Source of the DNA: Macrostomum lignano
Lineage: Eukaryota
Assembly: GCA_002269645.1 (NCBI GenBank)
Contig: NIVC01004192.1
Span: 1 to 55,861 of the forward strand
Length of the DNA: 55,861 bases
Reading direction: 5' to 3'
Shown here: positions 48,201 to 54,200 of the stretch, piece after piece
Position numbering within the stretch: position 1 is the first letter of the stretch
How the letters are laid out: every line of letters begins with the position of its first letter
Translations under genes and position numbers: made by a program
The notes under the pieces: model-generated
Seen by the model: the letters and a program-made list of their open reading frames with translations, nothing else
What the model was told of the DNA's origin: nothing
Databases searched by the model: none

Positions 48201-51200
48201 CCAACCCAATCCAACACAATCCAACACAATCCAACACAATCCAACACAGTCCAACACAGTCCAACACAATCCAACACAATCCAACACAATCCAACACAAT
48301 CGAACACAACCCAACACAATCCAATACAGTCCAGCACAGTCCAACACAATCCAACACAATCCAACACAATCCAACACAATCCAACACAATCCAACACAAT
48401 CCAACACAATCCAACACAATCCAACACAATCCAACACAATCCAACACAATCCAACACAATCCAACACAATCCAACACAATCCAACACAATCCAACACAAT
48501 CCAACACAATCCAACACAATCCAACACAATCCAACACAATCCAACACAATCCAACACAATCCAACACAATCCAACACAATCCAACACAATCCAACACAAT
48601 CCAACACAATCCAACACAATCCAACACAATCCAACACAATCCAACACAATCCAACACAATCCAACACAGTCCAACACAATCCAACACAATCCAACACAAT
48701 CCAACACAATCCAACACAATCCAACACAATCCAACACAATCCAACACAATCTAACACAATCCAACACAATCCAACACAATCCAACACAATCCAACACAAT
48801 CCAACACAGTCCAACACAATCCAACACAATCCAACACAATCCAACACAATCCAACACCTCGCATTCGTTCCGAACGCAGCGCCGACGAGAAGTTTGACGG
48901 CACGTACCCGACAAACGTGGTGATCGAGCACACGGGCAACATGAACTTCATCCCGCCAGGAATGTTCAGATCCACCTGCAAGATTGACACCACCTGGTTC
49001 CCATTCGACACCCAGGTGTGCAAGCTCAAATTCGGGTCGTGGTCCTACGATGGCGGCACCCTGGACCTGAGGCTCAAGTGCTCAAATGAGTCGCTAAGCA
49101 CCAACGAAATGCGACTAAACGACCCCAATAACTGCTCAGAGATTGGCGGAGCAGATCTGGAGACCTATGTGCCCAGCGGGGAGTGGTATCTGGAAGGCAA
49201 GTCAACCAAGCGATAATGCATGGCTAATCTTTTCAAAAAATCACATTGCTGACAGTGTCATCTCATAGCCTAAACACACGAAACTTGAAACGCCGCAGCC
49301 CAGTGATCTGGTGCGGCGCTCTGATGCGCCAGCGGCCCAGGCTCGATTCCAAGTGCAGTCACATTAATTTTGGGCTAAATTGGAATCTCGGCTTGGCTCT
49401 TCTCGGGTAATTAACGCCCCTGAGTGCCAACCCCCAAGACACAGTGAAGTGTACAGCCTAACGATAAATAAAGTTAGGGCCGCTGTGCACTCCTGTGTGA
49501 GTGTGTGCCCGGGAGTATGACTGCCGCGCGCTTGTGTGCCTGCTCAGGGGAGTCGGCGGAATGGGCAGTAATGCCTCTCACCGGTTGTTTGACAACGTCG
49601 CTTAAAGTGCACCATGATAAAAAACGGTGTTACCATGCATTTTGTACTTTTAAGCTCGTACTACAAGAGTATATTTGGCAAATGATTAACGTCAGACACA
49701 TAGTCCCGAATTGAAGCTTGTACTGTACTTTTCTCTAACATAATTGTCGTTTTTTACACAGTTTTTTCTCTGTTACTAATTAACCTCTGGCAAATTGCAC
49801 TTGATTTTGCCACTATTATTACTCATAGTTACTCACTGGAGTCTACTCAAGTAAGAAAATCGAGGCTGTTTCTAGGTCAAAAACCTTTGTCAGAAACCTG
49901 TCCCAAAAGCCTGTGCTGTGTCAGAAGCAGCTATGTCAAAAGCCTGTGTCAGAAGCAGCTGTTCCAAAAGCCTGTGTCAGAAGCAGCTATGTCAAAAGCC
50001 TGTGTCAGAAGCAGCTATGTCAAAAGCCTGTGTCAGAAGCAGCTATGTCAAAAGCCTGTGTCAGAAGCAGCTGTTCCAAAAGCCTGTGTCAGAAGCAGCT
50101 ATGTCAAAAGCCTGTGTCAGAAGCAGCTATCCAAATGCCTGTGTCAGAAGCAGCTATGTCAAAAGCCTGTGTCAGAAGCAGCTATCCCAAATGCCTGTGT
50201 CAGAAGCCTGTCCCAAAAGCCTGTGTCAGAAGCCTGTCCCAAAAGCCTGTGTCAGAAGCAGCTGTGTCAGAAGCAGCTGTGTCAGAAGCAGCTGTGTCAG
50301 AAGCAGCTGTGTCAGAAGCAGCTGCGTCAAAAGCAGCTGTGTCAGAAGCAGCTGTGTCAGAAGCAGCTGTGTCAGAAGCCAGCATCAAAAGCGCAGCTGC
50401 CTCAGCCAGCAGAAGCAGACAACAAAGTGTCGAATACTTTCCACAGGCATGCCTGGAGTTCGCAACAGCGCCACATACGACTGCTGCCCGCACCCGTTCA
50501 TTGACCTGCAGTACAGCATTCGAGTCCGCAGGCGCAGGCTGTACTATTTATTCAATCTAATTGGGCCGTGCATTTTCATGGCCTGTTTGACCCTGCTTAG
50601 CTTCATCATTCCGCCGGATGCTGGGGAGAAAGTTAGCTTTGGTAGGGCCTCAATTTCTAAGAATTGCGAATGGATGATCAGGGTGGCGTCAGTCTGAGAA
50701 CTTCAACTTTCCTCAGTCTAAATAGTTTGTTGTAGTGTCTTTCAAGTGAATTTTCCTCAACCTGATCGTGTATAAATACGTGTCTGTGTAGTCTGCCAGC
50801 ATGCGCAAAGTACCATCAATATCTAGCAGCTGCAAGTACATCCCAGCTATACATTGCATACAGTAGTTGCACTTTCATGATTTCTTATCCAAAGAAAAAT
50901 CTTTTTAGCAGTTTTACTCTGTTAATTGTGTCTCCGTTCCAACTTGGCTATTAATTATTTAGTATACAGTCTGCCAATATAGTACTGGTACTATTGAATA
51001 GATAGACGCTGTACGATTTTCAACTTCTATTTTTAGTAACTTCTATATTACGTCATCGAGGCTATAGATAAGAAATATTTAACGTTAATAAATCTTATTA
51101 AAACTAAACTTTAAGGTCGCGAGCTGCGTCCCAGACTAATTAGAAGTTACTTTGAAATACCTGTTGAATAAGATTATTAAATAAACTGCAATTAATTGCA

Positions 51201-54200
51201 TGCTGATGAAATGCGCGATACAAAACGATACGAGAACTCACGGCTCCCGTTCCGGTGCCCCTACCCGCCCCCGAACCCGACATCCCAACCTGCAGGCATG
51301 GACGGGAAGAGGACGGCAGCTGAGTACGACTGCTGCCCATATCCGTTCATCGATCTGAGCTACTTCATTCAGATACGGAGGCGAACTCTGTACTATGGCA
51401 TTAACCTCATTATTCCTTGCGTGCTCATCTCATCAATGTCGCTGCTCACCTTTGTTCTGCCGCCGGATGCCGGTGAAAAAATCTCTCTTGGTACGTGTCT
51501 TAATCTTGTGCTGGATTTAGCAGAGCTGGGCTGTATAGAGTGGGTAAAAGTGGGTAAACTGCTTCTAGTATGGGTAAGCTACCAGTTCAACCGTGAGTCT
51601 ATGGGGAAAGCTACCTGTTCAACCGGGAGTCTATGGGAAAGCTACCTGTTCAACCGGAGTCTATGGGTAAGCAACCAGTTCAACCGGAAGTCTATGGGAT
51701 AAGCTACCTGTTCAACCGGAAGTCTATGGGGTAAGCTACCTGTTCAACCGGAAGTCTATGGGGTAAGTTACCTGTTCAACCGGAAGTCTATGGGGTAAAC
51801 TACCTGTTCAACCGGAAGTCTATGGGTAAACTACCTGTTCAACCGGAAGTCTATGGGTAAACTACCTGTTCAACAAAAAGTACGGTTAAACTGCCTTCTA
51901 AAATGAAAGACTTTTGAAATTCGATTGGAGAAGCAGCAGTTTTACCGGAAAAAGCTTCTGTATTTTAGCGGTGACAAATTGGACTAACCAACCGTGTAAA
52001 TACCACAATAAACAGTTTAGTAAACTAGCAATCGAAATGCTGATTAAACAAGACAGTCTGTAAAAAAGAGGTGAGTTCGCAATTTCAATGAACCAACCAT
52101 TCTGCTCAAACCGCAATCCCCCGATCATGCTGCGCAATCGAACTCATCCCAGGAGTGACAATTATGCTGTCACTGTCAATGTTTCAACTGCTAGTGGCTG
52201 ACGCTATGCCGCAGACGTCAGAGTCTGTGCCGCTAATTGGTGAGGCTTTCGTTGGCAACTCTGAGTGCTTTGCTTGGCGACAGGAGTTCGGTTTGGTTTG
52301 CTGTTTTTTTATTAAAACCGATGATGGGGTGGTGGGCTGTCTCTGATGATTTTACGGCACAACTAACAATTGCCATGATTTTGTTAATCATGCAAACGCC
52401 TTTTCAATATTCCTTTACGCATTTGCTTGATAACAATATTTTTTTTACGTTTCTTAGCTTACCATTGGTGTTGCGTGAACTCAGCAACACCGCTTGCTTG
52501 CTCTGTTTCAGTCGCCTTGGATTTGCTGCGCGCATGCTTTTGCCTGCAAACTTATCGACGCATCTTTTGACATTCTTTTTTTACCTACATTTTCCTGAAA
52601 ATATTTTCTAACAGCGCGTGATCCCTTGCTCAAGTCGAAATAGGGCCTGGGGAAGGGAGAGGGGGCTGCTCAAACCAAGGCCACTATGATCATCCATTCT
52701 GACGGACAGATCCAACAACAATTGCTAACCCAGCTAACCTGAATGCCCTGCGCCTTGCATTTATCAGGGGTCACAATCCTGCTGTCACTAACAGTGTTTC
52801 TTATGATGGTCGCTGAGTCCATGCCGCCAACATCAGACGCTGTGCCGTTGATAGGTGAGGTTGCTACGCCGCTGGGCTAATCTACTCTACACATACGTTG
52901 TAGTTCCCAGTGAATTGGAGAGAAATTAAGCTTTAGAAGTGTCGAAATAATGCGCTTTAGCGGACTGTGAGATATCGGTCGTTCGAAATGGTGGTAGCTG
53001 AAAAAAGTATAGACTAATTCTGAAAATAGCCAAGAAACAGATGTACAGTGAATCGAGCCTTGGGAGGAATTTGATAACACAGTGTACAGTGAGTGGGGCA
53101 GGGAGGAATTTGATAGCACAGTGTACAGTGAGTGGGGCAGGGAGGAATTTGATAGCACAGTGTACAATGAGTGGGGCAGGGAGGAATTTGATAACACAGT
53201 GTACAGTGAGTGGGGCAGGGAGGAATTTGATAGCACAGTGTACAGTGAGTGGGGCAGGGAGGAATTTGATAGCACAGTGTACAGTGAGTGAGGCAGGGAG
53301 GAATTTGATAGCACAGTGTACAGTGAGTGGGGCAGGGAGGAATTTGATCACAGTGTACAGTGAGTGGGGCAGGGAGGAATTTGATAACACAGTGTACAAT
53401 GAGTGGGGCAGGGAGGAATTTGATAACACAGTGTACAGTGAGTGGGGCAGGGAGGAATTTGATAGCACAGTGTACAGTGAGTGGGCAGGGAGGAATTTGA
53501 TAGCACAGTGTACAGTGAGTGAGGCAGGGAGGAATTTGATAGCACAGTGTACAGTGAGTGGGGCAGGGAGGAATTTGATAACACAGTGTACAGTGAGTGG
53601 GGCAGGGAGGAATTTGATAACACAGTGTACAGTGAGTGGGGCAGGGAGGAATTTGATAACACAGTGTACAGTGAGTGGGGCAGGGAAGAATTTGATAGCA
53701 CAGTGTACAGTGAGTGAGGCAGGGAGGAATTTGATGACACAGCAGTGTACAGTGAGTGTGGCAGGGAGGAATTTGACGATAACATTCCTGATACTCAATT
53801 TAAGATAATTGAAAGAATTTAACGAAGAACAGAACTCTATACTCCTGTATCACGAATCCATCTGTGTAGGGCTCTACATGGTAAGATTACTTTGTCTGGT
53901 ATTTTAATTCAGTGAAGATATTGCCAGATTTACTAAAGTACACATTGAGAAAACATTATAGCTAGGGATAGCTAGCAAAGTTTTTTTGTAAAATATTACT
54001 AGTATGCAAAAAAATTAAACGCACGTCTTATAGATGGACCATCTTTAGCTATCTTACATGTATATCTTCAACAGGTTAGCCTGCACCGAAATTTACCCAA
54101 CTCTGTTCAGTGGTAAAATTATACTATTGATTGACTTTGCGAGAGCGATTTTACTAATCCTATACTTTGTGGTGAAGGGCGCTGCTTGTTTTGATTAACT

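Follow-up and report, generated by a model that had tools for sequence, protein, structure and literature searches.

The window analysed here, the whole stretch of 55,861 nucleotides, is one Macrostomum lignano contig carrying a single alpha7-like nicotinic acetylcholine receptor (nAChR) alpha-subunit gene, in which exons 3, 6 and 7 each occur as a tandem pair. From their sequence and conservation, we consider it probable that the three pairs are functional, mutually exclusive alternative exons. Because a working four-helix subunit has room for a single exon from each pair, mutually exclusive splicing is the most likely mode of use. RNA-based annotation shows that the major whole-animal isoform is 3b-6b-7a, while purifying selection on the remaining copies points to 3a, 6a and 7b as conserved exons of minor or cell-type-specific isoforms.

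Gene organization and the three exon pairs

By its sequence the gene encodes a nicotinic alpha subunit of the alpha7-like group, which includes insect alpha5/6/7 and nematode ACR-16. Pfam matches to Neur_chan_LBD (E 1e-59 to 1e-61) and Neur_chan_memb (E 1e-44 to 1e-50) were obtained with either exon set, and four transmembrane helices, M1 to M4, are readable in the translation. The best protein matches are M. lignano paralogs, followed by protostome alpha7, alpha6 and acr-16 proteins. The exon sizes also match those of CHRNA7, whose exons measure 45, 110, 195, 87 and 110 nt.

All exons lie on the forward strand. Exon 1 (33236..33290), encoding the signal peptide, was located by tblastn with the N-terminus of P0007, the window's own annotated protein (100% match; the exon end is approximate). 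Exon 2 (42860..43026, 167 nt) opens the ligand-binding domain and ends in SLQQIIDL. It is followed by two 45-nt exons of phase 0-0, the AG/GT-bounded alternative copy 3a (44967..45011) and 3b (46763..46807), which is the copy used in P0007, then by exon 4 (47839..47948, 110 nt, single copy) and exon 5 (48880..49196, 317 nt). The latter encodes the Cys-loop (C-x13-C), ends in GEWYLE and has a GC donor (AAG/gcaagt) that is conserved in paralog B and in L001, a contig overlapping the window. Downstream of the duplicated exons 6 and 7, exon 8 (54312..54420) encodes M3, and exon 9 (54566..55158) the cytoplasmic loop, M4 and the stop codon.

An earlier note made from the letters alone had placed two 195-nt exons and two 87-nt exons between exons 5 and 8. 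Their coordinates hold exactly: 6a (50447..50641), 6b (51296..51490), 7a (52153..52239) and 7b (52768..52854) are all open, in phase 1-1 and AG/GT-bounded, and can be joined in frame to exon 5 upstream and exon 8 downstream. Acceptor and donor read ttccacag and gtagggcc for 6a, aacctgcag and gtacgtgt for 6b, catcccag and gtgaggct for 7a, and tttatcag and gtgaggtt for 7b. Both of the pairs described in that note are thus real, but its two-pair scheme is incomplete, as 3a and 3b form a third; by tblastn, exons 3, 6 and 7 each occur exactly twice in the window and every other exon once.

The two members of each pair encode the same part of the receptor. Exons 3a and 3b specify a 15-residue strand of the ligand-binding domain. 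Exons 6a (a-type) and 6b (b-type, canonical) run from the loop C tip through pre-M1, M1 and the M1-M2 loop into M2 (residues −4′ to 3′), and both carry YDCC (the vicinal cysteines of loop C, YxCC motif), RRRxLYY, M1 and PPDAGEK(V/I)S(F/L). Exons 7a and 7b each continue M2 from residue 4′ to 20′ and add the M2-M3 linker. Amino acid identity within the three pairs is 59-67% (59% for 6a/6b, 61% for 7a/7b and 67% for 3a/3b), and nucleotide identity is 62% for 6a/6b and 73% for 7a/7b. At codon positions 1, 2 and 3, identities are 66, 78 and 41% for 6a/6b and 71, 93 and 54% for 7a/7b, which, judged from the sequences, is the pattern of old coding duplicates. Each pair thus shows the properties of a tandem cluster of alternative exons, namely equal length (195/195, 87/87 and 45/45 nt), equal phase (1-1, 1-1 and 0-0), homology and splice sites of its own.

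Transcript evidence and the choice between adjacent exons

The only isoform with RNA support is 3b-6b-7a: the RNA-based gene models P0007 and P0004 contain 6b and 7a and skip 6a and 7b. The annotation derives from a StringTie/TACO genome-guided transcriptome built with an isoform-frac of 0.75 and therefore keeps dominant isoforms only (PMC5730564). Among the models, the ab initio P0010 alone includes exon 3a; transcripts from this locus with 6a, 7b or 3a were not found, and the protein database gave no M. lignano fragment containing 6a or 7b. Because the lengths of these exons are divisible by three and the introns measure 528-654 nt, exclusion can be enforced neither by nonsense-mediated decay nor by steric hindrance.

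Two observations suggest that the choices at exons 6 and 7 may be coupled. The first is the exon content of M. lignano models, in which just two 6/7 combinations are seen, 6b+7a at loci A and B, and 6a+7b in paralog E. The proteins of paralog E, and equally those of C and D, were modelled ab initio on an older assembly, so that their exon content does not come from transcripts. The second is a 31-nt intronic complementarity between a site just past the 6a donor (50668..50698, GAATGGATGATCAGGGTGGCGTCAGTCTGAG, forward strand, 27-57 nt downstream) and a site just before the 7b acceptor (52669..52699, CTCAAACCAAGGCCACTATGATCATCCATTC, forward strand, 69-99 nt upstream). The candidate duplex is 81% complementary, has a 13-bp perfect core and a computed energy of −41.9 kcal/mol, and is the best non-repeat complementarity within the 5.1-kb region; its 13-mer core is found nowhere else in the window. 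For splice-site-proximal 150-nt windows alone, its score was reached in 1/500 shuffles, in a test defined post hoc, after the hit, and over the whole 5.1-kb region it was reached in 13/200 dinucleotide shuffles, which is marginal. For the other donor/acceptor window pairs the scores were 16-26, whereas the shuffle maxima averaged 27. Of the docking/selector pairings that the earlier note had proposed to look for in the introns, one strong arm pair was found, which does not fit the scheme of a docking site with a selector beside each variant. Pairing of the two arms would loop out 6b and 7a and would yield 6a-7b, the outer pair, as the alternative to 6b-7a, the inner pair. We regard coupling of the 6/7 choices by this duplex as about evenly balanced.

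Alternatively, each pair could be exclusive and make its own choice, which would allow four combinations of exons 6 and 7, or eight if exon 3 is counted, with exclusion imposed by trans-acting splicing factors or other RNA structures. This explanation competes with coupling only, and we see it as a credible but lesser possibility. It is in keeping with the marginal region-wide significance of the candidate bridge, and with RefSeq annotation, where two spiders, Argiope and Parasteatoda, show all four combinations of exon 3 with M2, and the nemertean Lineus longissimus shows mixed exon 3, 4 and 6 combinations; these spider and Lineus combinations, however, concern clusters parted by constitutive exons, not adjacent ones. 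In Lineus, moreover, a b-type exon 6 is joined to, and works with, a 7b-like M2 exon, so that a 6b+7b combination is functionally possible. Against free combination stand the two combinations found in M. lignano models, the fact that the paralog B locus and the trematode orthologue have kept exactly 6b+7a, with the 7a type as their sole M2 exon type, and the position of the complementarity, which joins donor-proximal sequence of 6a to acceptor-proximal sequence of 7b.

Conservation of both copies and assembly quality

The predicted alternative use of the exons, coupled or not, implies that both copies of each pair are maintained. The earlier note had named neutral decay as a refutation of its reading; no copy of any pair is decaying. 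Both copies are under purifying selection, being conserved between phyla as well as among paralogs whose dS is saturated. The a- and b-types are kept in four or five M. lignano paralogs, of which the closest pair (A and B) has a dS of ~1.1 and a dN of ~0.10, and they form separate clades with bootstraps of 292/300 and 261/300. Paralogs A, C, D and E all retain an intact a-type exon 6 with 58-77% identity, matching constitutive exon 5 (65-79% among paralogs), and 7b identity in A, C and E is 79-93%. Exon 7b belongs to the type general among spiralians and shares 89% identity with the M2 exon of the nemertean.

These data bear directly on the possibility that 6a, 7b and 3a are relics that are never spliced, the gene product being solely 3b-6b-7a, which we consider very unlikely. 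The RNA annotation does show 3b-6b-7a alone, the 6a donor (gtaggg) is weak, the protein database is devoid of fragments with 6a or 7b, and paralog B and trematodes do without both exons. Nevertheless, frames and AG/GT sites are intact in several paralogs with a dS of at least 1.1, the a-type is as conserved as a constitutive exon and retains a codon-position bias, and its hallmark residues are common to Lineus, in which an a-type isoform is annotated in RefSeq; the match of 7b to the nemertean exon argues in the same direction, and the annotation pipeline drops minor isoforms.

Positions 46294-55861 of the window dovetail with positions 1-9522 of L001, with 6 mismatches and 118 gap positions that are almost only 1-nt indels. 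L001 represents the same locus and carries the same four exons in the same order, the encoded protein being 100% identical. In the window, exon 8 measures 109 nt instead of 110 because one nucleotide is deleted at TCG(G)TGG, a deletion not shared by L001, and exon 9 shows several frame changes relative to L001/P0004, in which both exons are intact. Conversely, exon 4 is frameshifted in L001, close to the end of that contig. Comparison of the two contigs indicates that the exon 8 and 9 frameshifts in the window are consensus (assembly) errors where the contig ends. That the locus is a dead gene, or that the extra exons stem from a collapsed or misjoined paralog, a reading to which these frameshifts and the redundant, repeat-rich M. 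lignano assembly (PMC5730564) might lend some credit, is exceedingly improbable, given the small differences and intact exons in the L001 overlap, the 6a-6b-7a-7b order on both contigs, its mirroring in the paralog C and D protein models, and the 6a-6b order in Lineus and Capitella genomic DNA; the misassembled paralog that the earlier note had raised against itself is excluded by the same overlap.

Relation to other spiralian and arthropod receptor genes

The earlier note knew of no loop C/M1 alternative and of no comparable arrangement outside arthropods. Neither statement stands, as the RefSeq isoforms of Lineus swap a homologous a/b exon (X3 and X6 are a-type, X1, X2 and X4 b-type, all of 480 aa), and annelid gene models likewise contain the pair. 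In the window, Lineus (L003, 76692-76886 and 77676-77870) and the annelid Capitella (L005, 5422-5616 and 5767-5961), a 195-nt a-type exon lies upstream of a 195-nt b-type exon, and the gene model of the annelid Owenia contains an a/b pair in tandem. Five alignment columns separate all a-types from all b-types in three phyla: RRR(K/R/Q) in a-types versus RRR(T/V) in b-types, LYY(L/V/I) versus LYY(G/A), L versus M in M1, and EK(V/L)x(F/C) versus EKISL. Neighbour-joining grouped all seven a-types across phyla in only 72/300 bootstraps and recovered no cross-phylum a-type clade; a possible single ancient origin of the pair is suggested by exon order and diagnostic residues. Our literature search found no paper describing the spiralian a/b loop C-M1 pair.

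In contrast with the two M2 exons of M. lignano, Lineus, Capitella and Owenia have a single one, and Lineus adds an exon 4 pair. That Lineus and Capitella combine a 6a/6b pair with one M2 exon, and that spiders and insect alpha6 combine M2 pairs with one loop C/M1 exon, bears out the proposal that the 6a-6b-7a-7b order stems from tandem single-exon duplications, not from duplication of a block. The 6a/6b pair would thus not be a Macrostomum invention, and the M2 pair would have arisen by a separate duplication.

The closest characterized counterpart is insect alpha6 (Dalpha6), in which exons 3a/3b and 8a/8b/8c are spliced in a mutually exclusive manner (Jin et al. 2007, PMC1919356). As in M. 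lignano, an alpha5/6/7-like receptor gene has its 45-nt exon, on the loop D side, and its 87-nt M2 exon duplicated with equal sizes and phases, in-frame exon lengths mean that nonsense-mediated decay cannot police double inclusion, and one copy dominates expression (PMC1919356). The M. lignano gene differs in belonging to the Platyhelminthes, in having two M2 copies rather than three, in the extra loop C/M1 pair that directly adjoins the M2 pair, and in that its exclusive splicing is predicted from sequence.

Comparable duplicated exons are carried by other arthropod alpha7/alpha6 genes. In alpha7 models of termite, Timema, Schistocerca, Nilaparvata, barnacle and decapod origin, the loop C/M1 block is present twice and the M2 block two to four times, and, as predictions that mostly string the copies in tandem, they show copies of the 65-residue exon followed by copies of the 29-residue M2 exon, as in M. 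lignano. Their second loop C/M1 copy is without the spiralian a-type residues and is placed after the canonical copy, so it probably represents a separate duplication. The D20′, Q and E hallmarks of flatworm 7a recur in one M2 variant of arthropods (..IADALPQTSEAIPLL); in the exon 7 tree, built on 28 residues, bootstraps are below 60, and 7a is linked to the insect variant only by these shared residues. The 6a/6b pair is neither Macrostomum-specific nor arthropod-restricted, and M. lignano provides a further case of a known arrangement, familiar from insects and present in the annotation of other worms, to which this flatworm gene is newly added.

Competing RNA secondary structures, with a docking site and selectors, act in the mutually exclusive splicing of Dscam exon 6 and 14-3-3 xi. 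The candidate bridge described here resembles these systems in that long-range intronic pairing, near a donor and a remote acceptor, would place the alternative exons between them in a loop. It differs from them in having one arm pair only, and in that it would link two different exon clusters.

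The nicotinic receptor gene and its duplicated exons

The window, 55,861 bp long, is a complete contig from Macrostomum lignano, a free-living flatworm, and its own annotated protein is BOX15_Mlig020283g3 (P0007). Between ~33.2 and 55.2 kb, the plus strand carries a gene for an alpha7-like nicotinic receptor alpha subunit. The gene opens with a signal peptide exon (exon 1, 33236-33290) and exon 2 (42860-43026, 167 nt), followed by two 45-nt exons of phase 0-0, each coding for 15 residues, 3a (44967-45011) and 3b (46763-46807), the latter being the copy found in the RNA-based model. 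Exons 4 (47839-47948, 110 nt) and 5 (48880-49196, 317 nt) precede two 195-nt exons coding for loop C, M1 and the start of M2, 6a (50447-50641) and 6b (51296-51490), and two 87-nt exons coding for the rest of M2 and the M2-M3 linker, 7a (52153-52239) and 7b (52768-52854). Exons 8 (54312-54420, 109 nt for a canonical length of 110) and 9 (54566 to ~55158) complete the gene. The ligand-binding and transmembrane domains of Pfam are matched whichever exon set is used. Re-examination upheld the positions, lengths, phase (1-1) and splice sites that the earlier note had assigned to the 6a/6b and 7a/7b exons; both pairs are real, but the note had missed the third pair, 3a/3b, whose position is homologous to that of insect alpha6 exons 3a/3b. 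No hidden extra copies, such as an exon 4' or 7c, were detected in the window.

Every splice site is of the GT-AG type except for a GC-AG intron following exon 5. This GC donor (AAG/gcaagt, at 49197-49202) lies directly upstream of the 6a/6b choice and is conserved on the overlapping contig NIVC01002951.1 (L001) and in the contig of paralog B (L002). Long tandem arrays (for example AGAC x220, a 21-mer x62, a 10-mer x82, and 28-, 32- and 39-mers) occupy most introns of the gene (43062-43942, 44541-44884, 45231-46559, 47002-47457, 48042-48857, 49916-50379, 51572-51874 and 53062-53776), with none in the 6a-6b and 7a-7b introns; the 28-mer array immediately before 6a includes palindromic CAGCTG units and, as an array, is strongly self-complementary. 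Two features on the minus strand belong to other genes unrelated to the exon pairs: an ORF coding for a PARP catalytic domain (5172-6293, Pfam E 1.4e-29) and an exon-like ORF coding for a PDZ domain (26062-26394, E 3.7e-05).

Exon 8 is short by one G at TCG(G)TGG; relative to L001, at least four frame changes occur in exon 9 (window 54312-55158). A pseudogene is ruled out as the source of these frameshifts by the comparison of the two contigs: window positions 46294-55861 overlap L001 positions 1-9522 end to end with 6 mismatches and 118 gap positions, almost all differences being 1-nt indels, and exons 8 and 9 are intact on L001 (protein P0004, through its C-terminal end). The last 9.6 kb of the window and the first 9.5 kb of L001 are one locus assembled twice. 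L001 has a frameshift of its own in exon 4, near its contig start. Because of this overlap and because the assembly was made by Canu from PacBio reads (PMC5730564), the frameshifts in exons 8 and 9, and in L001 exon 4, are contig-end consensus indels rather than mutations. All four of the 6a, 6b, 7a and 7b exons are present on both contigs with 100% identical protein, and they do not stem from a misassembled paralog.

M. lignano has this gene in at least five groups of paralogs. The window locus (A) holds 3a, 3b, 6a, 6b, 7a and 7b; paralog B (L002; P0003, P0127, P0128) holds only 3b, 6b and 7a; C (P0005, P0121) holds 6a, 6b, 7a and 7b; D (P0011) holds 6a, 6b and 7a; and E (P0013, P0126) holds 6a and 7b. 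A and B are the closest paralogs, yet their dS is ~1.1 and their dN ~0.10. Identity of the a-type exon 6 among A, C, D and E is 58-77%, the same range as that of the constitutive exon 5 (65-79%), and 7b is 79-93% identical among A, C and E. At codon positions 1, 2 and 3, identity in the window reaches 66, 78 and 41% between 6a and 6b, and 71, 93 and 54% between 7a and 7b. As judged from paralog conservation and this codon-position pattern, both copies of each pair are under selection, and the neutral decay of either copy that the earlier note had considered is excluded. The a-types of M. lignano group apart from its b-types, each as a clade of its own (292/300 and 261/300 bootstraps, respectively), which indicates that the a/b exon duplication is older than the gene duplications.

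Splicing of the exon pairs and predicted receptor isoforms

For this assembly, the GenBank proteins derive from a transcriptome built with the genome as guide (StringTie/TACO, isoform-frac 0.75, TransDecoder; PMC5730564). Both P0007 and P0004 contain 3b, 6b and 7a but lack 3a, 6a and 7b; the 3b-6b-7a isoform is supported by RNA, and inclusion of 3a, 6a or 7b is at most minor. No M. lignano fragment with 6a or 7b was found in the protein database among targets of ~0.55-1.76x query length. The UniProt models with all copies in tandem (P0001, P0002, P0005, P0010, P0011) are ab initio predictions on the older ML2 assembly and for this reason provide no evidence for double inclusion.

Mutual exclusion within the pairs is probable because double inclusion would add an extra transmembrane helix, because the homologous pair of the nemertean Lineus longissimus is annotated as exclusive, and because exclusivity of the insect M2 exons is experimental. 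As the earlier note had anticipated, including both copies would preserve the frame, every alternative exon length being divisible by three, and this rules out nonsense-mediated decay as the exclusion mechanism. Steric hindrance is ruled out by the introns between pair members, of 654 nt (6a-6b) and 528 nt (7a-7b), and U2/U12 incompatibility by the splice site types.

Exons 6a and 6b differ in loop C beside the CC pair (H versus Y), in the arginine motif before M1 (RRRR versus RRRT), over most of M1, and at M2 positions 1' (V versus I) and 3' (F versus L); the -1' glutamate and the 2' serine are unchanged. Exons 7a and 7b differ at the pore-facing position 13' (M versus V), at 15'-17', at the outer ring position 20' (D versus E) and in the M2-M3 linker. 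Loop C, M1, the pore lining and the M2-M3 linker set agonist pharmacology, conductance, gating and allosteric drug sensitivity, and the insect counterpart, alpha6, is the target of spinosad. Given which positions change and which stay, the isoforms should differ in gating, conductance and pharmacology and not in ion charge selectivity. Were splicing to follow the proposed scheme, a single flatworm gene, along with its paralogs, would produce alpha7-type subunits varying in loop C, M1, the pore lining (13', 15'-17', 20') and the linker.

Gene models with copies in tandem (P0001, P0002, P0005, P0010, P0011, P0012, P0014, P0015, P0020, P0021, P0024 and P0117) span the flatworm, annelids, insects and a spider, their proteins gaining extra transmembrane helices; two M2 blocks are likewise present in an entry for Drosophila Dalpha6 ('variant type V'). 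These models look like systematic annotation errors, and since many public models wrongly chain the copies, knowledge of the a/b exons should be useful for annotation.

A candidate RNA bridge and possible coupling of exon choices

The earlier note had proposed looking in the introns for docking/selector pairings. An ungapped complementarity scan of a 5-kb region yielded one strong non-repeat arm pair, 50668-50698 with 52669-52699 (31 nt, 81% complementary, a 13-bp perfect core, −41.9 kcal/mol), but its region-wide significance is only marginal, the score being reached by 13/200 shuffles. Among 15 pairs of donor-proximal and acceptor-proximal 150-nt windows, a test chosen post hoc, it was reached by 1/500 shuffles. 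Folding 150-nt windows with duplexfold was uninformative as large loops are permitted. The 13-mer core is absent elsewhere in the 55.8-kb window; arm 1 starts 27 nt past the weak 6a donor (gtaggg) and 69 nt separate the end of arm 2 from the 7b acceptor. If the arms paired, 6b and 7a would be looped out and splicing of 6a to 7b would be favoured.

Whether the exon 6 and exon 7 choices are coupled in this manner or freely combined is a roughly evenly balanced question. A division into modules, 6a+7b outer and 6b+7a inner, is consistent with three observations: the RNA-based isoform uses the inner pair, exactly this pair is kept by paralog B and by the trematode orthologue, and paralog E models hold exactly the outer pair. 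Free combination gains from Lineus, in which a b-type exon 6 is joined to a 7b-like M2 exon. We tentatively entertain, as somewhat less probable than its negation, a nested switch in which a conserved intronic RNA bridge between the 6a donor and the 7b acceptor would set the choice between outer and inner modules, M1 and M2 always being swapped together, the modules having been split between paralogs (inner only in B, outer only in E) and 6a/6b descending from a spiralian ancestor more than 500 million years ago. Possible coupling of two adjacent exon clusters by an RNA bridge is the newest remaining element of this system and is directly testable, as M. lignano is amenable to transgenics.

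Related exon pairs in other animals

RefSeq isoforms of Lineus, all of 480 aa, differ in which copy of exon 3, of exon 4 or of the loop C/M1 exon they contain, and the alternative loop C/M1 exon bears the hallmarks of flatworm 6a. On the Lineus contig (L003), 6a (76692-76886) precedes 6b (77676-77870), and the gene has a single M2 exon there. The Lineus exon 4 copies (69550-69819) are only ~52 nt apart, short enough for steric exclusion, and 103 nt lie between the exon 3 copies. The annelid Capitella has 6a (L005, 5422-5616), 6b (5767-5961) and an exon 3 pair, and an Owenia model holds a and b loop C/M1 exons in tandem. Across three phyla, five alignment columns fully discriminate a-types from b-types; neighbour-joining did not recover a single cross-phylum a-type clade from 64 residues (72/300), nor monophyly of 7a/7b-type M2 exons across phyla from 28 residues. 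In the trematode Opisthorchis viverrini, the loop C/M1 exon occurs twice with identical protein (L004, 44607-44801 and 45641-45835) and the preceding exon is partly repeated, which probably reflects either an assembly error that duplicated them or a very recent duplication, rather than an a/b pair; its M2 exon is of the 7a type only.

The earlier note knew of no such arrangement outside arthropods; these nemertean and annelid pairs show that it is restricted neither to M. lignano nor to arthropods. The note's observation is confirmed and its interpretation partly supported. The loop C/M1 pair appears to be of ancient origin in Spiralia, and RefSeq isoforms of other species already display it. 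Literature searches found no paper on a loop C/M1 alternative exon or on mutually exclusive exons in flatworm or lophotrochozoan nAChR genes; alternative loop C/M1 exons in protostome alpha7-like genes are old, widespread and apparently undescribed.

The published precedent is insect alpha6, with exons 3a/b and 8a/b/c (PMC1919356). In arthropods, models of alpha7 (termites, Timema, Schistocerca, Nilaparvata, Rhodnius, a barnacle and decapods) carry two 65-residue blocks in tandem together with two to four M2 blocks, and in spiders each of the four pairings of exon 3 with M2 is represented among RefSeq isoforms. The nemertean M2 exon shares 89% identity with flatworm 7b, and the 7a type is the sole M2 type in trematodes and paralog B. 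Common D20', Q and E hallmarks link 7a to one insect alpha7 M2 variant, homology and convergence being inseparable over 28 residues. The M. lignano gene is a new, unannotated flatworm instance of the tandem alternative exons known from protostome alpha7/alpha6-type genes.
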